Shown: positions 3,001 to 56,900 of the stretch, in pieces
Layout: each line of letters starts with the position of its first letter
Numbering within the stretch: the first letter of the stretch is position 1
NCBI GenBank assembly: GCA_964057225.1
Contig: CAXKVF010000094.1
Location: 62,001-126,000, forward strand
Length of the DNA stretch: 64,000 bases
Direction: 5' to 3'
Source: Auanema rhodensis
Lineage: Eukaryota; Animalia; Nematoda
Made by a program: the position numbers and the translations under genes
The notes under the pieces: model-generated
Seen by the model: the letters and a program-made list of their open reading frames with translations, nothing else
Databases searched by the model: none
Told to the model about the DNA's origin: nothing

Positions 3001-6000
3001 ACGTGAAGCGAGTTACATACCAAGTGCACATCACGTGTACATTTAATTAGCATAAATTAAAGTTCACGTAAATTTCAAAGTCATGGTTACCATGAACCAA
3101 TATCAATTAAAATTTGTTTTTAGACTAATATGGACATGGGCAATCTAATTTTGAAAACCGCATCTCTTTATCTTTCACGTGAAGCGAGTTACATACCAAG
3201 TGCACATCACGTGTACATTTAATTAGCATAAATTAAAGTTCACGTAAATTTCAAAGTCATGGTTACCATGCACCAATATCAATAAAAATTTGTTTTTAGA
3301 CTAATATGGACATGGGGAATCTAATTTTGAAAACCGCATATCTTTATCTTTCACGTGAAGCGAGTTACATACCAAGTGCACATCACGTGTACATTTAATT
3401 AGCATAAATTAAAGTTCACGTAAATTTCAAAGTCATGGTTACCATGAACCAATATCAATTAAAATTTGTTTTTAGACTAATATGGACATGGGCAATCTAA
3501 TTTTGAAAACCGCATCTCTTTATCTTTCACGTGAAGCGAGTTACATACCAAGTGCACATCACGTGTACATTTAATTAGCATAAATTAAAGTTCACGTAAA
3601 TTTCAAAGTCATGGTTACCATGCACCAATATCAATAAAAATTTGTTTTTAGACTAATATGGACATGGGGAATCTAATTTTGAAAACCGCATCTCTTTATC
3701 TTTCACGTGAAGCGAGTTACATTCCAAGTGCACATCACGTGTACATTTAATTAGCATACATTAAAGTTCACGTAAATTTCAAAGTCATGGTTACCATGCA
3801 CCAATATCAATAAAAATTTGTTTTTAGACTAATATGGACATGGGGAATCTAATTTTGAAAACCGCATCTCTTCATCTTTCACGTGAAGCGAGTTACATAC
3901 CAAGTGCACATCACGTGTACATTTAATTAGCATAAATTAAAGTTCACGTAAATTTCAAAGTCATGGTTACCATGCACCAATATCAATAAAAATTTGTTTT
4001 TAGACTAATATGGACATGGGGAATCTAATTTTGAAAACCGCATCTCTTTATCTTTCACGTGAAGCGAGTTACATACCAAGTGCACATCACGTGTACATTT
4101 AATTAGCATAAATTAAAGTTCACGTAAATTTCAAAGTCATGGTTACCATGAACCAATATCAATAAAAATTTGTTTTTAGACTAATATGGACATGGGGAAT
4201 CTAATTTTGAAAACCGCATATCTTTATCTTTCACGTGAAGCGAGTTACATACCAAGTGCACATCACGTGTACATTTAATTAGCATAAATTAAAGTTCACG
4301 TAAATTTCAAAGTCGTGGTTACCATGCACCAATATCAATAAAAATTCGTTTTTAGACTAATATGGACATGGGGAATCTAATTTTGAAAACCGCATCTCTT
4401 TATCTTTCACGTGAAGCGAGTTACATACCAAGTGCACATCACGTGTACATTTAATTAGCATAAATTAAAGTTCACGTAAATTTCAAAGTCATGGTTACCA
4501 TGCACCAATATCAATAAAAATTTGTTTTTAGACTAATATGGACATGGGGAATCTAATTTTGAAAACCGCATCTCTTTATCTTTCACGTGAAGCGAGTTAC
4601 ATACCAAGTGCACATCACGTGTACATTTAATTAGCATAAATTAAAGTTCACGTAAATTTCAAAGTCATGGTTACCATGAACCAATATCAATTAAAATTTG
4701 TTTTTAGACTAATATGGACATGGGGAATCTAATTTTGAAAACCGCATCTCTTTATCTTTCACGTGAAGCGAGTTACATACCAAGTGCACATCACGTGTAC
4801 ATTTAATTAGCATAAATTAAAGTTCACGTAAATTTCAAAGTCATGGTTACCATGAACCAATATCAATAAAAATTTGTTTTTAGACTAATATGGACATGGG
4901 GAATCTAATTTTGAAAACCGCATCTCTTTATCTTTCACGTGAAGCGAGTTACATACCAAGTGCACATCACGTGTACATTTAATTAGCATAAATTAAAGTT
5001 CACGTAAATTTCAAAGTCGTGGTTACCATGCACCAATATCAATAAAAATTCGTTTTTAGACTAATATGGACATGGGGAATCTAATTTTGAAAACCGCATC
5101 TCTTTATCTTTCACGTGAAGCGAGTTACATACCAAGTGCACATCACGTCTAAATTTAATTAGCATAAATTAAAGTTCACGAAAATTTCAAAGTCATGGTT
5201 ACCATGAACCAATATCAATAAAAATTTGTTTTTAGACTAATATGGACATGGGCAATCTAATTTTGAAAACCGCATCTCTTTATCTTTCACGTGAAGCGAG
5301 TTACATACCAAGTGCACATCACGTGTACATTTAATTAGCATAAATTAAAGTTCACGTAAATTTCAAAGTCATGGTTACCATGCACCAATATCAATAAAAA
5401 TTTGTTTTTAGACTAATATGGACATGGGGAATCTAATTTTGAAAACCGCATCTCTTCATCTTTCACGTGAAGCGAGTTACATACCAAGTGCACATCACGT
5501 GTACATTTAATTAGCATTAATTAAAGTTCACGTAAATTTCAAAGTCATGGTTACCATGAACCAATATCAATAAAAATTTGTTTTTAGACTAATATGGACA
5601 TGGGGAATCTAATTTTAAAAACCGCATCTCTTTATCTTTCACGTGAAGCGAGTTACATACCAAGTGCACATCACGTGTACATTTAATTAGCATAAATTAA
5701 AGTTCACGTAAATTTCAAAGTCATGGTTACCATGCACCAATATCAATAAAAATTTGTTTTTAGACTAATATGGACATGGGGAATCTAATTTTGAAAACCG
5801 CATCTCTTCATATTTCACGTGAAGCGAGTTACATACCAAGTGCACATCACGTCTAAATTTAATTAGCATAAATTAAAGTTCACGAAAATTTCAAAGTCAT
5901 GGTTACCATGAACCAATATCAATAAAAATTTGTTTTTAGACTAATATGGACATGGGCAATCTAATTTTGAAAACCGCATCTCTTTATCTTTCACGTGAAG

Positions 6001-24000: not shown

Positions 24001-24707
24001 TTAAAGTTCACGTAAATTTCAAAGTCATGGTTACCATGCACCAATATCAATAAAAATTTGTTTTTAGACTAATATGGACATGGGGAATCTAATTTTGAAA
24101 ACCGCATCTCTTTATCTTTCACGTGAAGCGAGTTACATACCAAGTGCACATCACGTGTACATTTAATTAGCATAAATTAAAGTTCACGTAAATTTCAAAG
24201 TCATGGTTACCATGAAGCAATATCAATAAAAATTTGTTTTTAGACTAATATGGACATGTGGAATCTAATTTTGAAAACCGCATCTCTTCATCTTTCACGT
24301 GAAGCGAGTTACATACCAAGTGCACATCACGTGTACATTTAATTAGCATAAATTAAAGTTCACGTAAAATTCAAAGTCATGGTTACCATGAACCAATATC
24401 AATAAAAATTTGTTTTTAGACTAATATGGACATGGGGAATCTAATTTTGAAAACCGCATCTCTTTATCTTTCACGTGAAGCGAGTTACATACCAAGTGCA
24501 CATCACGTGTACATTTAATTAGCATAAATTAAAGTTCACGTAAATTTCAAAGTCATGGTTACCATGAAGCAATATCAATAAAAATTTGTTTTTAGACTAA
24601 TATGGACATGGGGAATCTAATTTTGAAAACCGCATCTCTTTATCTTTTACGTGAAGCGAGTTACATACCAAGTGCACATCACGTGTACATTTAATTAGCA
24701 TAAATTA
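1..24707. repeat. 176-bp tandem satellite array, left block (~140 monomers)
   Basis: The opening sequence tatctttcacgtgaagcgag recurs every 176 bp (1, 177, ... 881, 1761, 2641). Monomers differ by only a few SNPs. The array stops at ...agcataaatta (24707). Confidence 0.99.
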
Positions 24708-24712
24708 GTCAA

Positions 24713-24741
24713 GGTTTATTGTTCTTTATCACAGGTTATAA
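24713..24741 (-). other. Conserved 3'-terminal motif/stem-loop of element 1 (TTATAACCTGTGAT-N3-GAACAATAAACC)
   Basis: Identical to 53937-53964 of element 2 apart from the N3 spacer. Can fold with an AACCU loop and contains AATAAA. Confidence 0.75.
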
Positions 24742-24928
24742 CAATAGCAGTTTTGAAAAAAGAAAGTGGATAAAAGAAGTTCCTTACAATATGAACATGA
24801 TTATATAAATTGATTGACATGAAAACATTAATTGTATAGAGATAAGAATAATTATTGAATCAATTATGTCAGTAGAAAATATATATTCTAAACAAGTAAA
24901 TCTATGTGTCATAGTTGTCAACCCATCC

Positions 24929-25112
24929 TTGATAAACAAGGGATTTGTTCAGTTCAAAAAATATGACCTGACCTCATTTTTACTTTTACCAGGTGCGGTG
25001 GAACTTAGAGAAAAAGTCGAGCCCGTTCTGGTAATCAGAGGTAACTATCACCAGATTCGTATGGCTAATGCCTATAGAGTCCATGGTGCAGTAACATTGT
25101 AGCAAAGGGAAC
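24929..25112 (-). other. Conserved structured RNA element in the element 1 3' UTR
   Basis: Colinear conserved blocks with 53568-53755, and stems with compensatory changes between the two elements. Confidence 0.75.
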
Positions 25113-25248
25113 AAGGATGTGGTTGAAAACAAAAAATGATACATGAAGAACATAGTTTGCATAGATATTTGTAGAAGACATATTGAAATAATAATTAGAG
25201 AACAAAATATCATAAGCAGACGAAAAACATTAATAATGAAAGTGCAAG

Positions 25249-28113
25249 CTAATCGCTAAGGAAAAGTTGAAGATGTTTGCGAAATTTGGGAGCTTTTTCA
25301 AGACTCACAATGTTTGATGGTATTGAATTCCAGAGTTCTATGGCTCTGTACTCGATACCTCTTCTAGTTTGAGTCTTCTGGACGTTTGGAAAATCCACAG
25401 TCCATTCGTGACGCCTTAGTGAGTGTGTGAATTTTTTGAGCTTAAAAATTTTCAAAGTATTCTCTGAAATTGGTTGTTTTATTTGGTTAAAATAAAAAAT
25501 TAAATCGAAAACTAGTCTTCTGAAAAATAACTTTTGCCCCCCTAGCAAAGACAGTTGATCTTCATAGCTCATTTTAGATCCTGAGCGCATGAAAACTGCG
25601 CGCAGAAACTTTTTTTGAACATTTTCAATCCGGTCTTTGTCTTTAGAATCTTGTGGGGACCAGATAATAGAAGCATATTCCAATATTGGTCTTATGTAAG
25701 TACAGAATAAGTTGTACATAAGAGAAGGCGATTTAGAGTAGAAACAACGTAAAATTATTTTACATTTTTTTGCTGCTTCACTTGTGATTTTGTTTATGTG
25801 GTTTGAGAAGGAGAGATTGTAATCTGTGAATACTCCAAGATCTTTGTAACAATCTACTGAAGATAGGTTAAAGTTACCAAAAGTGAAAGCGAAGTTTTCA
25901 GGATTACTAATTGGTTTATTTGACATAACCATTATTTTAGATTTAGAGATGTTAACGGCCATCCCGTTTGAGTCGCACCATAATTTTAATTGATCAAGGG
26001 CCCGCTGTAAACTAGTAGGGTTTTTGCTGTAGAGCTTCAAATCATCTGCATAGAGAATGGAGCTGACATCATTAGGAAAATCGGATGTTATGTCATTTAT
26101 GTAAAATAAAAACAACAGAGGACCAAGAACTGTACCTTGTGGTACACCACAAGTGAGTTGTTTAGGTGGTGATAAGGAATTATTGACCATAACTGAAAAA
26201 AACCTACCAGAGATGAAACTTTGGAGAAAGGAATGAAGTGGGCCTTGAATACCAATGGACTTGAGTTTTGAAAAAAGAGTAGAATGTTGTATAAGATCGA
26301 AGGCTTTTGAAAAGTCGATATAAGCTACAAAAACCGGAGTATTACAGTCCAATGATGATCTGAAAGAGATGTGGCTACTGAGAATTGCAGAAACAGTGCT
26401 TCTTTTAGGAAGGAAGGCGTGTTGATTTTGAGATATGGCACCATTGGAAATACCAAAATTAAGAAGTGGAGTACGTATTATACGTTCAAAGATTTTTGAG
26501 AGACTGGAAGTGAGTGAAATTGGGCGGTAGTTACTTGGATTTTCAGGTCGGCCCGTTTTGAAAATGGGACGAATCCAGGCTAACTTCCAATCAGGAGGAC
26601 AAGTTGAGGTAACTAACAAATTGTGAAAAATAAAAGCTAATGGATTAGCCAGAGTAAAAGCACATTGTTTAAGAAAGTAATATGGAATACCATCCGGAGA
26701 TGTGGATACCCTGAGTGGAAGACTATGAAGAGTTTTGTAGACCAATTCAGGTGTTATATCCATGAAATCAATGGTATGACTGGAAGAAGAAGAGACGGAA
26801 ACATGAGTGTTTTCCTGAGAGACAAGAGGAGAAAGAGGAGAAACCGTGAAAACCTCGGCAAATGCTGACACTTTATCAATATCTGAAGAAACTGACACAT
26901 TGTTGACAGTGAGGTTTGGAATGTCAGATGTTTTACCATTTAATCGGGCCTTACAAAAACGATAAAAAAGTTTGGAGTTTTTTAAGGCAGCAATACGCTC
27001 TTCCTCTAAAGCACAATTGATTTTTATTAGCTTGTCCAATTTTACTGAAAGATTTTTACGGCGAATCTCGTCAGATAGATATAAAGAGCAACTTAGCCTG
27101 TTAATTTGATTTCTGAGTTTTGCAATGTTACGATCCGCTTTTTTATTTTTCCTCGGTTGTTTTTTAGGAACATAAATGTCAATGATTGAATGTAGAATAG
27201 AGATAAACTTTGAATACGATTGGAGTGGAGTAAGACCTGAAAGTTCAGAACAGAAGTCGATGTTGACCAGTTGCCTATTGATACGTTCATAATCAGCCAA
27301 AAGGAAATTGCGGTCTGATAACATGGAGAGAGATGTGGGTTCAGCACTATGTAAATCTTGTAGATGAAAATTTTCAGATTTTGAAAGTATATGAAAGGTG
27401 ATGGAAAAATGATCCGAAGCCCCAAGTGGACCAGATCGCTTGATATTGTTGACACAACGAACGTTATTTGTAATTATATAGTCAAGAATATTTTCACCTC
27501 TAGTAGGAAAATTTACTAGCTGGTTTAGACAATTGTGATTGAGAAATTGGAGTAGAATTCTACTAGAAGGAGTAGGTTGAGAACATATACCAAGATCCCA
27601 GTTTATTTTAGGGAAATTAAGATCACCAGTGAGATAGAGAGACCGATTAACTAAATGATTTTGTAGATCACAAAGATAGTTTGAGAAATCTAAGCTAGAT
27701 GATGATGGAGAACGGTAACAAACAGAAAAAATAGAATTGGAAGATGTGATGAGAATATTTATAAACTGTATGGTAGATGAATTACAAGAGCAGGAAAGAA
27801 GACGAAAAGTAATATGTTTTTTGATGAAAAGTAGTACACCACCACCCCGTGATGAACATCTATCAGCCCTGAGGATATTATAGATGTCACCTAACGGAAG
27901 AAGATTAGTGTTAAATTGGGGGTAAAGCCAGGACTCTGATATAGCAATTATATCAGGAGAATTGGGAGAGATGATAACTGGGAGAAGATGAAGTTTGGTG
28001 AGAATTGAGCGTGCATTGTAACAGTGAACAGAAATGTAAGTGTGGTTAGAGACGAGAACAGGTGTTGACGATAACATTGGATCAACGAAAGGACCCGTTA
28101 TTGGACAAAACAA
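25249..28113 (-). CDS. ORF2: apurinic-like endonuclease + reverse transcriptase, intact reading frame
   Basis: EN motifs NARS, IAISESWL, RGGGV, YRSP, GDLNFP, LDY, SDH. RT motifs NYRPISLTS, QHAF, DFSKAFD, GVPQGTVLGPLLF, YADD, YKDLGV. The true N-terminus is uncertain: first ATG at 28077, or a +1 frameshift fusion at ~28088. Confidence 0.97.
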   Translation of the reverse strand: MFCPITGPFVDPMLSSTPVLVSNHTYISVHCYNARSILTKLHLLPVIISPNSPDIIAISESWLYPQFNTNLLPLGDIYNILRADRCSSRGGGVLLFIKKHITFRLLSCSCNSSTIQFINILITSSNSIFSVCYRSPSSSSLDFSNYLCDLQNHLVNRSLYLTGDLNFPKINWDLGICSQPTPSSRILLQFLNHNCLNQLVNFPTRGENILDYIITNNVRCVNNIKRSGPLGASDHFSITFHILSKSENFHLQDLHSAEPTSLSMLSDRNFLLADYERINRQLVNIDFCSELSGLTPLQSYSKFISILHSIIDIYVPKKQPRKNKKADRNIAKLRNQINRLSCSLYLSDEIRRKNLSVKLDKLIKINCALEEERIAALKNSKLFYRFCKARLNGKTSDIPNLTVNNVSVSSDIDKVSAFAEVFTVSPLSPLVSQENTHVSVSSSSSHTIDFMDITPELVYKTLHSLPLRVSTSPDGIPYYFLKQCAFTLANPLAFIFHNLLVTSTCPPDWKLAWIRPIFKTGRPENPSNYRPISLTSSLSKIFERIIRTPLLNFGISNGAISQNQHAFLPKRSTVSAILSSHISFRSSLDCNTPVFVAYIDFSKAFDLIQHSTLFSKLKSIGIQGPLHSFLQSFISGRFFSVMVNNSLSPPKQLTCGVPQGTVLGPLLFLFYINDITSDFPNDVSSILYADDLKLYSKNPTSLQRALDQLKLWCDSNGMAVNISKSKIMVMSNKPISNPENFAFTFGNFNLSSVDCYKDLGVFTDYNLSFSNHINKITSEAAKKCKIILRCFYSKSPSLMYNLFCTYIRPILEYASIIWSPQDSKDKDRIENVQKKFLRAVFMRSGSKMSYEDQLSLLGGQKLFFRRLVFDLIFYFNQIKQPISENTLKIFKLKKFTHSLRRHEWTVDFPNVQKTQTRRGIEYRAIELWNSIPSNIVSLEKAPKFRKHLQLFLSD
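28082..28093 (-). promoter_or_regulatory. Putative +1 ribosomal frameshift site UCC_UUU_CGU_UGA at the ORF1/ORF2 junction
   Basis: In ORF1 frame; ORF2 is open in the +1 frame across it; the same 9 nt are conserved in element 2. Confidence 0.7.
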
Positions 28114-29151
28114 CAGAAGATGATGCAGAAGGACTACTCATAGATCTGGTATTAGGTCCAGTTGGTTTAACTACCCGAGGCGGATTTTTTCTCCTTCTTG
28201 GGCTTATTGAATGATTTTTATCTGTTGGTACAGACACCTGCCTATTGTTAGACCGACTGGGTCTACCAGATTTACGAGGGGGGCTGGAGATGAGAGAAGA
28301 AATTGGTTTTAAGATTGAACTGCAAACGGCATCAACTACTGAAGGGGTTTCAGCTGGTTGAGTGTCCACAGTGACAGAGAGAGTGTTGATGGCATGCGAA
28401 GTAACATTGGTAGATTTACGGGGGACTTCAATAATTTTGAGATCCCGTACAAGAAAAGTCTTTTCAGTGTTATTTTCATTCTTGATTTTTGCTTCTTTTC
28501 GCAAGTTTTTCTCCAGTTCAATTTCGAAGGGGAGATAATCTCGTCGCAAAAACGTTTTTGAGAGGAAATCGAAGCATTTTGATTTATTGAATTTAATAAC
28601 TTGAATAATCTTGTCACGTAAATCTACCGATGGACACGTAATTATGAGAGGGCCAGGGGAATTAGATTTGAGAGTTGAACGTGCAATAGTAATTTGATTG
28701 CTATCGATCAAAGAAGACAAAGTGGTGTCCTGAGATTTCTCGATAATAAGATAATAAGTTTTAGTAACAACAGAGGTTCAGTTGGAAATTCTGTTGACTT
28801 TAATGGCACTCGAAACCAAAGGGCTCTTTTGGCACGGTAGAGGTACTTTGTCTCCTCTGATCGTAATTTTTGAAAATGACATGCTACATTGAGTGGGGAA
28901 AAAGTTGGAACACAGGTAGAATTAGTGTTGCTAGTGGTTTGAAATGAGTTAAAAGTTTGCTCTAACTTATCTAAGCGGGATTTGAAATCCGTTTCGATAG
29001 TTTTTAAGCGAGCCTCGTGCGACGTGATACTAATTTTCATACAGTTAAGCTCATTTTTTATATCATTTGACAATTTTGAAAAAGAGTTCTCGAGAGACTT
29101 TGAGAAATTTTGAAGAGCATTTGTAAGAAAATCATTAGTCACGAAAGACAT
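28082..29151 (-). pseudogene. ORF1 (coiled-coil + RRM/CTD-like + basic Ser/Arg-rich tail), frameshifted by an 8-bp duplication
   Basis: Track ORFs 28708-29205 and 28082-28720 join into one 353-aa frame from ATG 29151 if one copy of ataataag (28743-28750/28751-28758) is removed (...LKLIIEKSQDTTLSSLIDS...). The C-terminal half is homologous to element 2 (YLPFEI-LE-NLR-EAK, VRDL, SSPP-KSGR, SPRRRKNPPR, SFR*). Confidence 0.85.
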
Positions 29152-29366
29152 ATTGAAAAACGAGGGAGTAAAAGAAGGGAAGTAAGAAAGAATAAGAATA
29201 AACACTGAAGTGGAAAATAAAAAAGAAACAAATACGAGAGAAAGGAAATAATGATAAAACTAAAATGCGATACGAAAGAGAGCGCACCTTGACAAAGCCA
29301 GTCCGACGAAAATTTCCTTGACAGAAACGGATCCGGATCCAAACAGCGGAAGTCAACTGACGAGTG
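29152..29366 (-). other. 5' UTR of element 1 (presumed internal promoter region)
   Basis: Lies between the ORF1 ATG and the array, T/C-rich on the sense strand, and begins CACTCGTCAGTTGACTTCC. Promoter function is inferred from LINE biology only. Confidence 0.6.
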
Positions 29367-29971
29367 GGAGGTCAACTGACGAGTGTGGAGGTCAACTGAC
29401 GAGTGAGGAGGTCAACTGACGAGTGGGAGGTCAACTGACGAGTGTGGAGGTCAACTGACGAGTGGGAGGTCAACTGACGAGTGGGGAGGTCAACTGACGA
29501 GTGGGAGGTCAACTGACGAGTGAGGAGGTCAACTGACGAGTGGGAGGTCAACTGACGAGTGAGGAGGTCAACTGACGAGTGAGAGGTCAACTGACGAGTG
29601 GGGAGGTCAACTGACGAGTGGGGAGGTCAACTGACGAGTGGGAGGTCAACTGACGAGTGGGAGGTCAACTGACGAGTGAGGAGGTCAACTGACGAGTGGG
29701 AGGTCAACTGACGAGTGGGAGGTCAACTGACGAGTGTGGAGGTCAACTGACGAGTGGGAGGTCAACTGACGAGTGGGAGGTCAACTGACGAGTGGGAGGT
29801 CAACTGACGAGTGGGAGGTCAACTGACGACTGGGAGGTCAACTGACGAGTGAGGACGTCAACTGACGAGTGAGGAGGTCAACTGACGAGTGAGGAGGTCA
29901 ACTGACGAGTGAGGAGGTCAACTGACGAGTGAGGAGGTCAACTGACGAGTGAGGAGGTCAACTGACGAGTG
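29348..29971. repeat. 19/20-bp tandem array (GGAGGTCAACTGACGAGTG plus 0-1 extra nt), 32 units including the element-proximal one
   Basis: Counted directly: proximal unit ggaAgtcaactgacgagtg at 29348-29366, followed by 31 copies ending at 29971. Confidence 0.97.
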
Positions 29972-30000
29972 TTCACGTAAATTTCAAAATTTTAAATTTC
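29972..30000. other. Junction filler built from pieces of the adjacent satellite target
   Basis: (g)ttcacgtaaatttcaaa + attt + taaatttc precedes the resumed satellite aaattaaagttcacgtaaatttcaaagtc. Confidence 0.85.
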
Positions 30001-33000
30001 AAATTAAAGTTCACGTAAATTTCAAAGTCATGGTTACCATGAAGCAATATCAATAAAAATTTGTTTTTAGACTAATATGGACATGGGGAATCTAATTTTG
30101 AAAACCGCATCTCTTTATCTTTTACGTGAAGCGAGTTACATACCAAGTGCACATCACGTGTACATTTAATTAGCATAAATTAAAGTTCACGTAAATTTCA
30201 AAGTCATGGTTACCATGAACCAATATCAATAAAAATTTGTTTTTAGACTAATATGGACATGGGGAATCTAATTTTGAAAACCGCATCTCTTTATCTTTCA
30301 CGTGAAGCGAGTTACATACCAAGTGCACATCACGTGTACATTTAATTAGCATAAATTAAAGTTCACGTAAATTTCAAAGTCATGGTTACCATGAAGCAAT
30401 ATCAATAAAAATTTGTTTTTAGACTAATATGGACATGTGGAATCTAATTTTGAAAACCGCATCTCTTTATCTTTCACGTGAAGCGAGTTACATACCAAGT
30501 GCACATCACGTGTACATTTAATTAGCATAAATTAAAGTTCACGTAAAATTCAAAGTCATGGTTACCATGAACCAATATCAATAAAAATTTGTTTTTAGAC
30601 TAATATGGACATGGGGAATCTAATTTTGAAAACCGCATCTCTTTATCTTTCACGTGAAGCGAGTTACATACCAAGTGCACATCACGTGTACATTTAATTA
30701 GCATAAATTAAAGTTCACGTAAATTTCAAAGTCATGGTTACCATGAACCAATATCAACAAAAATTTGTTTTTAGACTAATATGGACATGGGGAATCTAAT
30801 TTTGGAAACCGCATCTCTTTATCTTTCACGTGAAGCGAGTTACATACCAAGTGCACATCACGTGTACATTTAATTAGCATAAATTAAAGTTCACGTAAAT
30901 TTCAAAGTCATGGTTACCATGCACCAATATCAATAAAAATTTGTTTTTAGACTAATATGGACATGGGGAATCTAATTTTGAAAACCGCATCTCTTTATCT
31001 TTTACGTGAAGCGAGTTACATACCAAGTGCACATCACGTGTACATTTAATTAGCATAAATTAAAGTTCACGTAAATTTCAAAGTCATGGTTACCATGAAG
31101 CAATATCAATAAAAATTTGTTTTTAGACTAATATGGACATGGGGAATCTAATTTTGAAAACCGCATCTCTTTATCTTTCACGTGAAGCGAGTTACATACC
31201 AAGTGCACATCACGTGTACATTTAATTAGCATAAATTAAAGTTCACGTAAATTTCAAAGTCATGGTTACCATGAACCAATATCAATAAAAATTTGTTTTT
31301 AGACTAATATGGACATGGGGAATCTAATTTTGAAAACCGCATCTCTTTATCTTTCACGTGAAGCGAGTTACATACCAAGTGCACATCACGTGTACATTTA
31401 ATTAGCATAAATTAAAGTTCACGTAAATTTCAAAGTCATGGTTACCATGCACCAATATCAATAAAAATTTGTTTTTAGACTAATATGGACATGGGGAATC
31501 TAATTTTGAAAACCGCATCTCTTTATCTTTCACGTGAAGCGAGTTACATACCAAGTGCACATCACGTGTACATTTAATTAGCATAAATTAAAGTTCACGT
31601 AAATTTCAAAGTCATGGTTACCATGCACCAATATCAATAAAAATTTGTTTTTAGACTAATATGGACATGGGGAATCTAATTTTGAAAACCGCATCTCTTT
31701 ATCTTTCACGTGAAGCGAGTTACATACCAAGTGCACATCACGTGTACATTTAATTAGCATAAATTAAAGTTCACGTAAATTTCAAAGTCATGGTTACCAT
31801 GCACCAATATCAATAAAAATTTGTTTTTAGACTAATATGGACATGGGGAATCTAATTTTGAAAACCGCATCTCTTTATCTTTCACGTGAAGCGAGTTACA
31901 TACCAAGTGCACATCACGTGTACATTTAATTAGCATAAATTAAAGTTCACGTAAATTTCAAAGTCATGGTTACCATGAAGCAATATCAATAAAAATTTGT
32001 TTTTAGACTAATATGGACATGGGGAATCTAATTTTGAAAACCGCATCTCTTTATCTTTCACGTGAAGCGAGTTACATACCAAGTGCACATCACGTGTACA
32101 TTTAATTAGCATAAATTAAAGTTCACGTAAATTTCAAAGTCATGGTTACCATGCACCAATATCAATAAAAATTTGTTTTTAGACTAATATGGACATGGGG
32201 AATCTAATTTTGAAAACCGCATCTCTTTATCTTTCACGTGAAGCGAGTTACATACCAAGTGCACATCACGTGTACATTTAATTAGCATAAATTAAAGTTC
32301 ACGTAAATTTCAAAGTCATGGTTACCATGCACCAATATCAATAAAAATTTGTTTTTAGACTAATATGGACATGGGGAATCTAATTTTGAAAACCGCATCT
32401 CTTTATCTTTCACGTGAAGCGAGTTACATACCAAGTGCACATCACGTGTACATTTAATTAGCATAAATTAAAGTTCACGTAAATTTCAAAGTCATGGTTA
32501 CCATGAAGCAATATCAATAAAAATTTGTTTTTAGACTAATATGGAAATGGGGAATCTAATTTTGAAAACCGCATCTCTTTATCTTTCACGTGAAGCGAGT
32601 TACATACCAAGTGCACATCACGTGTACATTTAATTAGCATAAATTAAAGTTCACGTAAATTTCAAAGTCATGGTTACCATGAACCAATATCAATAAAAAT
32701 TTGTTTTTAGACTAATATGGACATGGGGAATCTAATTTTGAAAACCGCATCTCTTTATCTTTCACGTGAAGCGAGTTACATACCAAGTGCACATCACGTG
32801 TACATTTAATTAGCATAAATTAAAGTTCACGTAAATTTCAAAGTCATGGTTACCATGAAGCAATATCAATAAAAATTTGTTTTTAGACTAATATGGACAT
32901 GTGGAATCTAATTTTGAAAACCGCATCTCTTTATCTTTCACGTGAAGCGAGTTACATACCAAGTGCACATCACGTGTACATTTAATTAGCATAAATTAAA

Positions 33001-50040: not shown

Positions 50041-50209
50041 GAATTATCTTCCTTTTGAAATTATCTTCCTTTTGAATTGATCTTCCTTTTGAAATTATCT
50101 TCCTTTTGAATTGATCTTCCTTTTGAAATTATCTTCCTTTTGAAATTATCTTCCTTTTGAAATTATCTTCCTTTTGAAATTATCTTCCTTTTGAAATTAT
50201 CTTCCTTTT
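50041..50209. repeat. 17-bp tandem array GAAATTATCTTCCTTTT x10, derived from ORF1 coding sequence (YLPFEI)
   Basis: Counted directly. The first unit is 16 nt and units 3 and 5 read gaattgat. The last unit runs in frame into TAT CTT CCT TTT GAA ATT CAA CTG. Confidence 0.97.
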
Positions 50210-50656
50210 GAAATTCAACTGGAAAACAACCTTCGCGAGGAAGCAAAAGAAAAAAACAAAAACAACACTAAGTCTGTCTTTTTGGTACGAGATCTTCGAC
50301 TTATTGAAGTTTCCCGCAATCCAGCCGATCCTCCAAACCCTCAAATAGCTCCCACTTCTTCTTGTAATCAAACTCCTAAAATACCATCTATTCACAACGT
50401 TCCATTACCAACACTCCATTCTCAAACTCTCACATCCCCAACTCTTTTTTCTAGCCCCCCTTGTAAATCTGGTAGAATGAGCCGGTCGAAGGAAAGACAG
50501 AACCGCACGTCAAAAGACAAGCGTTCTTCTGTTAGCCCAAGACGTCGCAAAAATCCACCACGATCCGCAAAATTAACCACAGATCAAATTACCAGATCTG
50601 TTAGCATGAACAATACATCTCAACGTCTCACGTCTGACAAAATGTCCTTTCGTTAA
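50198..50656 (+). pseudogene. C-terminal fragment of ORF1 of element 2
   Basis: YLPFEIQLENNLREEAK...VRDLRLIEV...SSPPCKSGR...SPRRRKNPPR...SFR* aligns with element 1 ORF1. The N-terminal part is lost to 5' truncation. Confidence 0.9.
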
Positions 50657-53477
50657 CACTGTCACGTCTTCAACCCCCCCTGTCTCACATCCTACCAGCC
50701 TCTCAGTTCAGTGTCTTAATGCACGTTCTATTCTTAACAAACTTCATATACTATCCCACGTTATTTCTTTATCCACTCCTGATATAATTGCAATATCAGA
50801 ATCATGGCTTTTTCCTGAGTTCGATACCCACCTACTCCCATGTAAACATACTTACACTATTTTTAGAGCCGATAGGTGTCTCTCACGTGGTGGTGGTGTT
50901 GTCCTCTATATTAAAAGTCATATCAAACCTTTTCTTCTTTCCTGTTCTTCTCCTCAATCTTCTATACAATTCATTAACTTACTCATACCTTCACTTAATG
51001 CTGTTTTCTCACTTTGTTATCGTCCTCCAACAGCTTCTCATTCAGATTTCATTTCGTTTCTTTCTGATCTACGTAAACAAATTTCCAAACGATCGTTCTT
51101 CCTAACGGGCGATCTTAATTTTCCTAAAATCAACTGGGACCTCGGTATTTGCTCTCAACCATGCTCCTCTAGTAGATCTATTCTTCAATTTCTTAACGAT
51201 AGCTGTTCTCATCAGTTGGTAAAGTTCCCTACCAGAGGCAAGAACATTCTTGATTATGTTATCACTGATAACATATCCAGTGTAGGCAACATATCCCGTT
51301 CTTCCCCCCTCGGCTCCTCGGATCACCATTCTGTGGTTTTCCAAATTGTTTCAGACTCTTTTCAGTTAGCTAATACAATCAGCTCTTCTAATACTTTGTC
51401 TCCGGTAGCATTACCTATGTTTTCTGATCGCAATTTTCAAGCTGCTGACTACAATCTCATCAATCATAGACTAGCCAAAATTGATTTCGCTAATCATCTC
51501 TCCGGTCTCACTCCTTTAGATTCTTACTCTAAACTTGTTCACATTCTTCACTCGGTCATTGATAGCTGCGTTCCCAAAAAACAAGAAAGAAGAAAAAAGA
51601 AGATTGACCGAGATATTTTAAAACTCTCATCTCATATAAAAAAACTCAGTTGTTCTTATCATCATCATGATGAATCTCGTCGTAAAAAACTTTCACATTC
51701 TCTTGATAAACTTATCAAGAATAGATTGGCTTTGGAAGAGGAACGTATTGCCAACTATAATAATTCAAAACTTCTTTACCGCTTTTGCAGAACCCGTTTG
51801 GGTGGCAGCACTTCAGATATCCCAAATCTCAAAATAGATAATGATTCTGTTTCGTCTGATTCTGACAAAGCTTCTATCTTTGCTACTACCTTCTCTGTTC
51901 GCCCCCTTCCTATCTCTCTACCACATGCTCCTCATTCCTTTTCTTCTACTATTATCGACTTTATTGATGTCTCCCCTCTCAACGTTCACAAAATTCTCTG
52001 TCAGTTACCTCTTCGGGTATCAACATCCCCAGACGGAATCCCTTATTTCTTCCTAAAAAATTGTGCTTCTACTCTCTCTCAGCCTCTGGCCTTTGTTTTC
52101 CACAATCTACTTGTTTCCTCCTCTTGCCCTCCTGACTGGAAAACAGCTTGGATTCGTCCCGTTCATAAATCAGGACTTTCTTCTAACCCGGCTAATTATC
52201 GTCCTATTTCTCTCACATCCAGTCTATCTAAAGTTTTTGAACGTCTCCTTCGTTCACCTCTTCTTGACTTTGGTATTTCCTCCGGCTTTATTTCTCCTAA
52301 TCAGTTTGCTTTTCTTCCAAAACGCAATACTGTATCAGCAATTCTTAGTAGTCATGTTCTCTGGAGATCTGCTGTAGACAAGAAAAAACCTGTTTATGTT
52401 GCCTTTATTGACTTTTCTAAGGTTTTTGATCTCATAAATCATTCCGTTCTGTTAGCTAAATTAAAATCAATTGGCATTGCCGGCTGTATTCTCACTTTTC
52501 TCAAAAACTTCATTACTAATAGATCTTTCTCTGTATTAGTTAATTACTCTCTATCCGTCACAAATTCTTTGCCCTGTGGAGTTCCACAGGGGACAGTACT
52601 GGGTCCTCTTCTTTTTTTATTTTATATAAATGATATTACATCAAATTTACCTGATGATGTACATCCAACTCTTTATGCAGACGATCTTAAACTAAGCAGC
52701 ACAAATCCGGTAAGTTTACAACTAGCTTTGAATATTCTCAAAAACTGGTGTCTATCTAACGGTATGAAAGTTAATACTTCCAAATCCAAAGTTATGATTA
52801 TATCGAGTACCACTACACCAAGAACAAACACAATTTTCAAATTTGGAGACATTTCTTTAGCTACAGTATCATCATATAAAGATCTAGGTGTGTGTACAGA
52901 CTATAATCTCTCTTTTAACAGTCATATAGACAGAATTTCTAACATTGCTGCTCACAAATGTCGTGTTATTTTGCGTTGTTTTTACTCAAGATCACCAACT
53001 TTGATGTTCAAACTTTTTTGCTGCTATATCCGACCAATTTTAGAATATGCTTCAGTTGTATGGTCTCCTCAGAATAACAAAGATAAAGCGCGCATTGAGT
53101 CTGTCCAAAAAAAGTTTTTAAACGCTATTTTTAAGAGAGCCGAAATAGCTTTGGATTACAAGAACCAGCTATTGTTTCTTGGAGCCGAGGAGCTAACGTT
53201 TAGAAGACTACTAATTGATCTCGTTTTTTATCATAATCAGATTACTAAAAATGTTCCAGAAAACAACCTTAACTTTTTTACTACCAAGCACTATGCTCAT
53301 TCACTACGTAGACATCTATGGAATGTTGAATACCCTGATCTTTGGAAGAGCGAAACAAGAACTGGAATAGAATACAGAGCTATTCAAATCTGGAACACAC
53401 TCCCTGAAAACATCGTTCAACTAAGAAACACTTCCAGCTTCAGAAAACATCTTTCTATTAATCTTAACAATATTTAA
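50610..53477 (+). CDS. ORF2 of element 2: APE endonuclease + reverse transcriptase (stop-to-stop frame; the track start at 51216 is an internal TTG)
   Basis: Manual translation upstream of 51216 is stop-free back to TGA 50607-50609 and gives CLNARSIL...IIAISESWL...RGGGV...CYRPP...GDLNFP. RT motifs GVPQGTVLGPLLF and YADD are present. Confidence 0.95.
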   Translation, partial: TIHLNVSRLTKCPFVNTVTSSTPPVSHPTSLSVQCLNARSILNKLHILSHVISLSTPDIIAISESWLFPEFDTHLLPCKHTYTIFRADRCLSRGGGVVLYIKSHIKPFLLSCSSPQSSIQFINLLIPSLNAVFSLCYRPPTASHSDFISFLSDLRKQISKRSFFLTGDLNFPKINWDLGICSQPCSSSRSILQFLNDSCSHQLVKFPTRGKNILDYVITDNISSVGNISRSSPLGSSDHHSVVFQIVSDSFQLANTISSSNTLSPVALPMFSDRNFQAADYNLINHRLAKIDFANHLSGLTPLDSYSKLVHILHSVIDSCVPKKQERRKKKIDRDILKLSSHIKKLSCSYHHHDESRRKKLSHSLDKLIKNRLALEEERIANYNNSKLLYRFCRTRLGGSTSDIPNLKIDNDSVSSDSDKASIFATTFSVRPLPISLPHAPHSFSSTIIDFIDVSPLNVHKILCQLPLRVSTSPDGIPYFFLKNCASTLSQPLAFVFHNLLVSSSCPPDWKTAWIRPVHKSGLSSNPANYRPISLTSSLSKVFERLLRSPLLDFGISSGFISPNQFAFLPKRNTVSAILSSHVLWRSAVDKKKPVYVAFIDFSKVFDLINHSVLLAKLKSIGIAGCILTFLKNFITNRSFSVLVNYSLSVTNSLPCGVPQGTVLGPLLFLFYINDITSNLPDDVHPTLYADDLKLSSTNPVSLQLALNILKNWCLSNGMKVNTSKSKVMIISSTTTPRTNTIFKFGDISLATVSSYKDLGVCTDYNLSFNSHIDRISNIAAHKCRVILRCFYSRSPTLMFKLFCCYIRPILEYASVVWSPQNNKDKARIESVQKKFLNAIFKRAEIALDYKNQLLFLGAEELTFRRLLIDLVFYHNQITKNVPENNLNFFTTKHYAHSLRRHLWNVEYPDLWKSETRTGIEYRAIQIWNTLPENIVQLRNTSSFRKHLSINLNNI
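50645..50656 (+). promoter_or_regulatory. Putative +1 ribosomal frameshift site UCC_UUU_CGU_UAA
   Basis: In ORF1 frame; ORF2 is open in the +1 frame from 50610 and has no ATG before the end of the EN domain. Confidence 0.7.
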
Positions 53478-53567
53478 CCTTTCTCTGTTATTGTAACTTG
53501 AAATCTTGTTTATGTATATTCTTCTATTTACAAGCATTTAAGCCTCAAGCTATGTTAAAGTTAGACA

Positions 53568-53755
53568 GTTCCCTAGTTTACCTCTGAGACCTGTTACTAC
53601 GTATTTTATCCTATAGACATTAGTCATACGGATAGAACGATAGTTACCTCTTGCTGTCAGAACGGGCTTGACTCACATCAAGAGTTCCACCGTACCTGTC
53701 AGAATACTATAGAGGTCAGTGATCTACACTGAACAAATCAACTCTTCTTTATCAA
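53568..53755 (+). other. Conserved structured RNA element in the element 2 3' UTR
   Basis: Homologous to 24929-25112 (minus), with covarying stems. Confidence 0.75.
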
Positions 53756-53936
53756 ACTAGAACTGTTTCGAAACCTTAACAAACAAGTAGTGCTGCTCGC
53801 TATCATTGTAAAAGAAAATATGCTGAACCTGTTTCTTGTACATATATTTTTTTAGTCAATTATTACAAGTATGTTTGTATTGTAAGGTTCTTTTGAATAT
53901 CTGCAATTTTCCCGATTTATTAACCTTGTTTTCCGA

Positions 53937-53964
53937 TTATAACCTGTGATTCGAACAATAAACC
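53937..53964 (+). other. Conserved 3'-terminal motif/stem-loop of element 2
   Basis: TTATAACCTGTGATTCGAACAATAAACC, matching the element 1 3' end. Confidence 0.75.
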
Positions 53965-53971
53965 CGTTCAA

Positions 53972-56900
53972 ACGTGTACATTTAATTAGCATAAATTAAA
54001 GTTCACGTAAATTTCAAAGTCATGGTTACCATGAACCAATATCAATAAAAATTTGTTTTTAGACTAATATGGACATGGGGAATCTAATTTTGAAAACCGC
54101 ATCTCTTTATCTTTCACGTGAAGCGAGTTACATACCAAGTGCACATCACGTGTACATTTAATTAGCATAAATTAAAGTTCACGTAAAATTCAAAGTCATG
54201 GTTACCATGCACCAATATCAATAAAAATTTGTTTTTAGACTAATATGGACATTGGGAATCTAATTTTGAAAACCGCATCTCTTTATCTTTTACGTGAAGC
54301 GAGTTACATACCAAGTGCACATCACGTGTACATTTAATTAGCATAAATTAAAGTTCACGTAAATTTCAAAGTCATGGTTACCATGCACCAATATCATTAA
54401 AAATTTGTTTTTAGACTAATATGGACATGGGGAATCTAATTTTGAAAACCGCATCTCTTTATCTTTCACGTGAAGCGAGTTACATACCAAGTGCACATCA
54501 CGTGTACATTTAATTAGCATAAATTAAAGTTCACGTAAATTTCAAAGTCATGGTTACCATGAACCAATATCAATAAAAATTTGTTTTTAGACTAATATGG
54601 ACATGGGGAATCTAATTTTGAAAACCGCATCTCTTTATCTTTCACGTGAAGCGAGTTACATACCAAGTGCACATCACGTGTACATTTAATTAGCATAAAT
54701 TAAAGTTCACGTAAATTTCAAAGTCGTGGTTACCATGCACCAATATCAATAAAAATTCGTTTTTAGACTAATATGGACATGGGGAATCTAATTTTGAAAA
54801 CCGCATCTCTTTATCTTTCACGTGAAGCGAGTTACATACCAAGTGCACATCACGTGTACATTTAATTAGCATAAATTAAAGTTCACGTAAATTTCAAAGT
54901 CATGGTTACCATGAACCAATATCAATTAAAATTTGTTTTTAGACTAATATGGACATGGGGAATCTAATTTTGAAAACCGTATCTCTTTATCTTTCACGTG
55001 AAGCGAGTTACATACCAAGTGCACATCACGTGTACATTTAATTAGCATAAATTAAAGTTCACGTAAATTTCAAAGTCATGGTTACCATGAACCAATATCA
55101 ATAAAAATTTGTTTTTAGACTAATATGGACATGGGCAATCTAATTTTGAAAACCGCATCTCTTTATCTTTCACGTGAAGCGAGTTACATACCAAGTGCAC
55201 ATCACGTGTACATTTAATTAGCATAAATTAAAGTTCACGTAAATTTCAAAGTCATGGTTACCATGCACCAATATCAATAAAAATTTGTTTTTAGACTAAT
55301 ATGGACATAGGGAATCTAATTTTGAAAACCGCATCTCTTCATCTTTCACGTGAAGCGAGTTACATACCAAGTGCACATCACGTCTAAATTTAATTAGCAT
55401 AAATTAAAGTTCACGAAAATTTCAAAGTCATGGTTACCATGAACCAATATCAATAAAAATTTGTTTTTAGACTAATATGGACATGGGCAATCTAATTTTG
55501 AAAACCGCATCTCTTTATCTTTCACGTGAAGCGAGTTACATACCAAGTGCACATCACGTGTACATTTAATTAGCATAAATTAAAGTTCACGTAAATTTCA
55601 AAGTCATGGTTACCATGCACCAATATCAATAAAAATTTGTTTTTAGACTAATATGGACATGGGGAATCTAATTTTGAAAACCGCATCTCTTCATCTTTCA
55701 CGTGAAGCGAGTTACATACCAAGTGCACATCACGTGTACATTTAATTAGCATAAATTAAAGTTCACGTAAATTTCAAAGTCATGGTTACCATGAACCAAT
55801 ATCAATAAAAATTTGTTTTTAGACTAATATGGACATGGGGAATCTCATTTTAAAAACCGCATCTCTTTATCTTTCACGTGAAGCGAGTTACATACCAAGT
55901 GCACATCACGTGTACATTTAATTAGCATAAATTAAAGTTCACGTAAATTTCAAAGTCATGGTTACCATGCACCAATATCAATAAAAATTTGTTTTTAGAC
56001 TAATATGGACATGGGGAATCTAATTTTGAAAACCGCATCTCTTTATCTTTCACGTGAAGCGAGTTACATACCAAGTGCACCTCACGTGTACATTTAATTA
56101 GCATAAATCAAAGTTCACGTAAATTTCAAAGTCATGGTTACCATGCACCAATATCAATAAAAATTTGTTTTTAGACTAATATGGACATGGGGAATCTAAT
56201 TTTGAAAACCGCATCTCTTTATCTTTCACGTGAAGCGAGTTACATACCAAGTGCACATCACGTGTACATTTAATTAGCATAAATTAAAGTTCACGTAAAT
56301 TTCAAAGTCATGGTTACCATGAACCAATATCAATAAAAATTTGTTTTTAGACAAATATGGACATGGGGAATCTAATTTTGAAAACCGCATCTCTTTATCT
56401 TTCACGTGAAGCGAGTTACATACCAAGTGCACATCACGTGTACATTTAATTAGCATAAATTAAAGTTCACGTAAATTTCAAAGTCATGGTTACCATGCAC
56501 CAATATCAATAAAAATTTGTTTTTAGACTAATATGGACATGGGGAATCTAATTTTGAAAACCGCATCTCTTTATCTTTCACGTGAAGCGAGTTACATACC
56601 AAGTGCACATCACGTGTACATTTAATTAGCATAAATTAAAGTTCACGTAAATTTCAAAGTCATGGTTACCATGCACCAATATCAATAAAAATTTGTTTTT
56701 AGACTAATATGGACATGGGGAATCTAATTTTGAAAACCGCATCTCTTCATCTTTCACGTGAAGCGAGTTACATACCAAGTGCACATCAAGTGTACATTTA
56801 ATTAGCATAAATTAAAGTTCACGTAAATTTCAAAGTCATGGTTACCATGCACCAATATCAATAAAAATTTGTTTTTAGACTAATATGGACATGGGGAATC

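Follow-up and report, generated by a model that had tools for sequence, protein, structure and literature searches.

Tandem arrays of terminal sequence at the 5′ ends of a satellite-inserted nematode LINE suggest outward reiteration at the insertion junction

A LINE inserted in satellite DNA of the nematode Auanema rhodensis begins with 32 tandem units of 19 or 20 nt, and arrays of short units also stand at the 5′ ends of its full-length relatives and of some copies that are truncated within coding sequence. From the comparison of these copies, we consider it somewhat probable that the array of this LINE, here called element A, is the layered product of an outward reiteration that acts across the family, is partly inherited and is changed after insertion; which polymerase carries out that reiteration, on which template (RNA or DNA) and when is what we infer. 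The original prediction for this DNA was that a LINE had written a repeat of its own 5′ terminus during integration. For the family, this idea is supported by the arrays at truncated ends, by the outer blocks of variant units and by the position of the unit at LINE 5′ ends, while for the array of element A itself, taken as the product of a single event, it is not. The genome surveyed comprises 181 Mb in 112 contigs, and the window, meaning the whole 64,000-nt stretch that was analysed, corresponds to C101:62001-126000.

Element A, its target site and its array

A 176-bp satellite makes up nearly all of the window (positions 1-24707 and 30001-64000), and the LINE interrupts it between these, with its 5′ end at 29971 and its 3′ end at 24708. 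The features of this insertion are the following:

24702..24707, target-site duplication AAATTA, left copy
24708..29971, minus strand, LINE element A, 5,264 bp, delimited by the satellite interruption, minus-strand ORFs, Pfam domains and the same ends in other copies
25249..28113, minus strand, ORF2, with an APE-type endonuclease and a reverse transcriptase (Pfam)
28082..29151, minus strand, ORF1, in two frames in element A
29152..29347, minus strand, unique portion of the 5′ UTR, from the array to the ORF1 ATG
29348..29971, minus strand, 5′-terminal array of 32 units, each CACTCGTCAGTTGACCTCC in the sense direction with one junction base or none
29348..29366, minus strand, innermost unit, a family-diagnostic variant (sense GACTTCC versus GACCTCC) shared by L001-L006
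29838..29971, minus strand, outer homogeneous block of six 20-nt units plus the terminal unit, which the duplicate L002 has unchanged
29972..30000, 29-nt filler at the 5′ junction of element A, a patchwork of the satellite just beside it
30001..30006, target-site duplication AAATTA, right copy

Element A is an APE-type non-LTR retrotransposon, as its ORF2 holds an AP-endonuclease-like domain (at about residues 47-238) followed by a reverse transcriptase domain (residues 526-731), and its family displays the LINE hallmarks of target-site duplication, a fixed 3′ end and variable 5′ truncation. The Pfam matches of ORF2 are RVT_1 (E = 5e-34), Exo_endo_phos_2 (E = 9e-8) and Exo_endo_phos (E = 4e-5), and Pfam detected no RNase H domain in it. 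The reverse transcriptase aligns with the human L1 ORF2p and R2 structures (E ~1e-12), and the best matches among ORF2 homologues are unnamed metagenomic proteins with at most 35% identity. The frame of ORF1 is split by an 8-bp tandem duplication (CTTATTAT twice) at about 28750-28770 of the window (minus strand), which is also present in L002, a copy on contig C95, and absent from five other young copies.

The element A family is site-specific, in that independent insertions have the same target at the 3′ junction: in about 17 of them, the satellite sequence TAATTTATGCTAATTAA follows that junction directly, while four independent insertions of the family fall outside this site. One off-target insertion has a TAAAAAC duplication elsewhere in the satellite monomer. 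Element A is flanked by a 6-bp duplication, AAATTA, and its 3′ terminus, ...CCTTGAC without poly(A), is common to all the copies compared. In L048/L049 (G000:C86:561176-565481), an extra TGAC stands at the 3′ end (...CCTTGAC TGAC) before the target, forming a small tandem repeat where reverse transcription starts. At the 5′ junction of element A, the source of the filler is the satellite 10-40 nt further on; for instance, 29972-29988 resembles 30010-30026.

The array makes up the first 624 nt of element A. TRF reports a single array over 29348-29971 (period 20, 32.0 copies, 95% matches, score 1076), together with a 39-nt period, and the 14-nt core of the unit occurs 32 times, compared with 0.01 expected from shuffles. 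The 32 units first counted were recovered in the assembled sequence both by an independent parse and by TRF, and the tally of the bases that follow ...GAGTG on the plus strand was exact for all 31 junctions (none at 14, A at 11, T at three, G at three and C at none). The two substitutions originally noted in unit bodies are likewise present, both G>C, in units 25 and 26, but there is a third, GGAAG for GGAGG, in the innermost unit.

Variation in this array concentrates at the junction between units. The irregular order of junction bases that had been described holds for the inner 20 junctions, which are compatible with a random order (p = 0.36), but not for the outer 11, which form two blocks: the outermost six (29852-29952) all have A, and the next five all have no extra base. 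A run of six equal junctions has a permutation p of ~0.013, and adjacency across all junctions gives p = 0.125. The junction base of the outer block is A on the plus strand, and T on the sense strand, in all six units, and the outermost unit of the array is complete and abuts the 29-nt filler.

Arrays in full-length and truncated copies

The 5′ UTR of element A has 29 matches in the genome, and all full-length copies of the element A LINE group have an array at their 5′ end, with unit numbers of 32, 27, 27, 19, 11, 8.6 (twice, in a duplicate pair), 2.8 and ~1.4. A subfamily that is 75% identical has 3-6 units per array, and subfamilies that are 66-70% identical, which include the lineage of a second LINE, element B, and insert at another site of the satellite monomer, have other units of 17-20 nt, numbering from less than one to at least 76 per array. 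For instance, the array of L020 (G000:C4:448047-451389), which is a full-length copy from the diverged lineage, comprises at least 76 18-nt units (1.4 kb), of which the inner 58 are identical and are followed further out by C>T variant blocks. In another region, G000:C3:10138127-10148627, partial and inverted element A copies form a cluster outside the satellite (L007-L009, L038), and two of them are duplicates in mirror orientation that have the same 8.6-unit array and the same flanks.

Across the group, the units of full-length arrays measure 17-23 nt and have a TGACCT core in common. Subfamily units that are otherwise unlike retain TGACCT(C/A), with the most variable spot right after it; in the diverged subfamilies, this spot directly follows the TGACCTC core, at the border between the array and unique sequence. 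On the opposite strand the core reads AGGTCA, the classical nuclear-receptor half-site, and it may be a transcription-factor site that the array multiplies. A TCAGTT within the unit was also considered as an arthropod-type initiator and set aside as weak, since the genome is that of a nematode.

The 16-nt core of the element A unit has 111 exact matches in the genome, compared with 0 for the reversed control, and element A-type arrays occur at about 15 loci. Among the matches listed (100 of the 111), the core always lies at the 5′ end of an element A LINE. With every listed match at a LINE 5′ end, the unit cannot be counted as a free-standing minisatellite, and it differs from an ordinary genomic minisatellite, whose locus is independent of the end of a mobile element.

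Irregular junction bases between units are seen in the array of element A and in L003, where their confinement to the junction fits an imprecise re-engagement at unit ends. Most arrays, in contrast, show no junction variation (L008, the inner 58 units of L020, L024 and L033), with uniform runs of up to 58, and also of 20, identical units in a row. As most arrays have such uniform junctions, the irregular addition of non-templated bases is probably not a routine step, and as variants are usually propagated in blocks, those once made are copied and do not arise afresh in each round. Both points weaken the earlier view of the junction bases of element A as non-templated additions.

Arrays also stand at the ends of some copies that are truncated within coding sequence. 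For element B, which is diverged from element A, the features are the following:

~50042-53972, plus strand, element B, a second, diverged LINE, truncated in ORF1
50042..50215, plus strand, terminal array of element B, 17 nt x 10.2

The 17-nt repeat of element B encodes part of ORF1. In a copy of the young subfamily (L033, 99.7% identical), the element starts at position 3848, inside the reverse transcriptase domain, and its own first 19 nt are present there 9.3 times in all, in an array that directly abuts the satellite. A further copy, L041, has about two copies (2.1) of its terminal ~19-20 nt plus an A-run, and in L047 a complex patchwork makes up the 5′ end. Truncation occurred at element positions 3848, 4198, 4205, 4228, 4629, 4858, 4876, 4959, 5047 and 5141. 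Overall, reiteration is found in three or four of about 13 independent truncated insertions, and the remaining ones are clean or have a short A/T-rich filler; three more truncated boundaries that were inspected, L061-L063, have no array. Element B lies in the same satellite monomer as element A but at another site, CACATCACGT^GTAC, which surrounds a CACGTG palindrome and is also used by the full-length relatives L020-L029.

At truncated ends, the step of the array is 17-20 nt whatever the sequence, and the array sits exactly at the junction. Because their source is coding sequence, these arrays were not inherited as repeats; the tagging of truncated copies with their own end sequence therefore points to synthesis at the 5′ junction and not to inheritance. 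The pattern is telomerase-like in the sense that a short template is copied in tandem whatever its sequence. The likeness extends to the pattern only, since there is no re-alignment through a defined complementary region: the homology between the start of the unit and the sequence after it amounts to 4 nt in element B, 0-1 in L033, 2 in L041 and 0 in element A.

Run-length maps of the units allowed the layout of the full-length arrays to be compared. In L004, L005, L020, L022, L025, L026 and L028, the unit type shared by the subfamily adjoins the unique 5′ UTR, with a homogeneous block of private variants on its outer side. For example, L004 has 11 outer units with a 3-nt deletion and four canonical ones inside, and L005 has four outer variant units and six canonical ones inside. 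Private blocks at one edge would be expected from the outward re-copying of the terminal unit and not from unequal exchange. Thus, integration seems to be the step at which the arrays are extended outward from the 5′ junction, given the self-derived arrays of truncated copies, the outer position of private blocks and the restriction of the unit to LINE 5′ ends.

Inheritance nevertheless contributes. In six young copies (L001-L006, of which L001 is element A), a T stands in the innermost unit where each of the outer units has C, including that of L006, which is only partial. This means that the element's own innermost unit did not serve as template for the outer ones, and since the innermost unit differs, at least part of an outer unit arrived via RNA. 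Both this T versus C difference and the nature of the arrays as a heritable family trait speak against the claim of some 31 cycles in one event. When the junction orders of L001, L003, L004 and L005 are compared, only one to four plain units beside the innermost are shared, and an odd unit, CCTCT, common to L001/L002 and L003 may be homologous or recurrent.

The single copy with a junction order similar to that of element A is L002, which is the same insertion, with an identical 870-nt 5′ flank, filler and ORF1 duplication and three point differences in 3.9 kb of the element. The two arrays differ by indels of six, two and one units (32 units in L001, 27 in L002); hence arrays change after insertion, unless one of the two assemblies is wrong, and a change in unit number between copies of one locus is a trait of minisatellites. 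It had been argued that ordinary expansion, unlike this array, would give blocks of variants; blocks do exist at its outer end, and L002 differs from it by three unit-indel events. Independent insertions bearing one array in one junction order would have spoken for pure inheritance, and the original prediction survives this comparison, because they share the unit but differ in both copy number and order. Turnover at the L001/L002 rate could alone, however, scramble the arrays of insertions that are 0.5-1% diverged, so that differences between insertions do not prove de novo synthesis.

Proposed mechanism and alternative explanations

In the mechanism that we favour, first-strand cDNA synthesis would reach the 5′ end of the RNA, the polymerase would re-engage ~19 nt back and the terminal stretch would be copied again many times, with the array extending outward before the cDNA joins the target. 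This re-engagement would need little or no homology and would usually be exact, and occasional slips or extra junction bases would create variants that are copied in later rounds. In full-length elements, part of the array would be transcribed, inherited and re-extended in the next generation, and after insertion arrays would gain and lose units. The 32 units of element A would then comprise an inherited inner part with irregular junctions, an outer block added last and some later change. The six identical 20-nt outer units are probably the best candidate for the last addition. The array is not demonstrably the outcome of 31 cycles of one event. As for the ~19-nt ruler, our guess is that a terminal piece of RNA of footprint length might be reused through end-to-end jumps.

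Several observations sit poorly with outward reiteration. It is seen in only three or four of about 13 independent truncated insertions, it leaves its ~19-nt ruler unexplained, ORF2 has no detected RNase H domain, and exact block copying leaves the irregular inner 20 junctions of element A unaccounted for. A stronger form of the same reading holds that the LINE reverse transcriptase itself has a repeat-addition activity, with a ~19-nt ruler and free of homology, and that full-length elements rebuild a promoter array of TGACCT-bearing units at each insertion, the conservation of that core across subfamilies being the sole hint at promoter activity. We put this forward tentatively, as something possible but doubtful.

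An alternative is that the array is an inherited 5′-UTR minisatellite made of promoter monomers, which changes only through DNA slippage or unequal exchange, with nothing being written at integration. We initially favoured this with some confidence, after other copies proved to have arrays of 1-32 units. In its favour, arrays are present in all full-length copies, the TGACCT core is kept across subfamilies with 66-100% identity, variant blocks occur and the two copies of one insertion have 32 and 27 units. It was dropped as the sole explanation because truncated copies have self-derived arrays: inheritance fails to explain why arrays of the same period, built from unrelated coding sequences, sit exactly where a 5′ end is truncated, why the outer side is consistently the place of private variants and why the unit, among the matches listed, is restricted to LINE 5′ ends. 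In this pure form, we regard it as unlikely.

It is also conceivable that a host repair polymerase, acting in polymerase-theta-type end joining, reiterates the sequence while the cDNA end joins the upstream target. Polymerase-theta-type end joining makes templated insertions, and both the fillers at 5′ junctions, which are patchworks of the nearby flank (29972-30000 and L047), and the 0-4 nt of homology that suffice for re-engagement are in keeping with such an activity. Nevertheless, the arrays are always templated by the element end, and only short fillers by the target, and we know of no report in which theta-type repair repeats a fixed 17-20-nt step exactly and in tandem tens of times. We therefore judge a host enzyme to be quite an unlikely author of the arrays.

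The strict single-event reading, in which a fixed 19-nt terminus of the RNA was the template for all 31 extra units and every junction base was added independently and without a template, has several observations on its side: the variation is confined to junctions and favours A on the cDNA strand, the inner 20 junctions could be in random order, a complete unit abuts the filler at the outer end, and truncated ends show reiteration. What makes it decidedly improbable is the T of the innermost unit versus the C of outer units in six copies, the two blocks formed by the outer 11 junctions, the lack of junction additions in most arrays, including those with 58 and 20 identical units, and the presence of arrays in every subfamily.

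The read evidence consists of short-read contigs from four public runs under three organism labels, and no RNA run is among those that contain this DNA. The inner boundary (29230-29373) is matched in all four runs with 0-1 differences, two runs have an 82-84-nt contig that covers both substituted units (29803-29886) without a difference, and the bins at the outer boundary have coverage in three. No contig spanning the whole array was found among the short-read contigs of the four runs, and 32 is thus the count in the assembly. An assembly artefact, in which the array or its junction variants are long-read consensus errors, might draw on this and on the G junctions, which extend a G run, a typical error site, but it is very unlikely, as about 15 loci have arrays of the same unit and the contigs of independent runs match the inner boundary (0-1 differences) and the substituted 82-84-nt stretch (exactly). 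The runs labelled as three organisms contain the element 5′ UTR at ~80% of sampled words and also cover the outer junction of the element A insertion; the LINE family, and perhaps this very insertion, is common to close strains or species.

Relation to known systems and meaning

Tandem repeats written at template ends have precedents. In LINEs of the I, CR1 and L2 types, repeats in the 3′ tail arise from slippage at the initiation of reverse transcription. The likeness to the element A array is that the element's polymerase would write a short tandem repeat where a template ends; the difference is that the units of those tails measure 3-8 nt, whereas the element A array has a unit of ~19 nt and lies at the opposite end of the template. 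With telomerase, the shared feature would be that a growing DNA 3′ end is extended by copying one short stretch of template again and again and re-aligning after each round. Unlike telomerase, however, there would be no dedicated RNA or fixed alignment region, the template being whatever lies at the 5′ end of the RNA and the unit ~19 nt long, and the likeness serves as a working analogy of outcome only, not as a claim of membership.

The nearest structural analogue of the element A array is the array of 5′-UTR monomers of mouse L1, which is thought to offset 5′ truncation and for which extension at the upstream end is among the proposals, the mechanism being called unclear (PMC6454616). As in mouse L1, the tandem units of the element A LINE stand at the 5′ end and their number varies between copies. 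In contrast, mouse L1 units are ~200 bp long and those of the element A group 17-23 nt, and here truncated copies form arrays of arbitrary coding sequence, which is not reported for L1.

R2-type reverse transcriptases are reported to add non-templated bases on run-off, and the 5′ junctions of R1 and R2 are clean or have microhomology, extra bases or duplicated patches of the target (PMC2718515). The element A LINE is similarly site-specific, with a fixed 3′ junction and variable 5′ junctions, and its filler at 29972-30000 resembles the “insertion site rearrangements” of R1 (PMC2718515). Nevertheless, what the R1/R2 survey documents is a handful of added bases or 16-27 nt from the target and not tens of tandem copies of the element's own terminus (PMC2718515), and the endonuclease of element A is of the APE type, while that of R2 is restriction-like. 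The bacterial DRT2 reverse transcriptase makes concatemeric cDNA by returning repeatedly to the start of its template region (PMC12039810). A tandem repeat made by repeated return to the template start is a resemblance in outcome only, as DRT2 is a prokaryotic defence system that uses a structured non-coding RNA as its template and has no link to integration. A full-text literature search found no account of 5′-terminal reiteration in LINEs, a blank that is not proof of novelty.

The 5′ reiteration described here would be a case of slippage or jumping at a template end by a retroelement polymerase, which is a known kind of behaviour. LINEs have to keep their 5′ end functional although their copying is prone to truncation, and this LINE family offers a natural record that bears on how they may do so, in which truncated copies are tagged with tandem copies of their own end sequence; the constant step of ~19 nt asks for a structural explanation. 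If the LINE enzyme is responsible, the behaviour of R2 at template ends in vitro would be extended to a repeat-adding mode in vivo, and one route by which short tandem repeats are born would come into view. If, moreover, the repeat addition is intrinsic to the reverse transcriptase, these elements would have a self-renewing front end and would constitute a living functional parallel between LINE enzymes and telomerase. As the family is a low-copy, young and site-specific one in a roundworm, these possibilities are experimentally testable.
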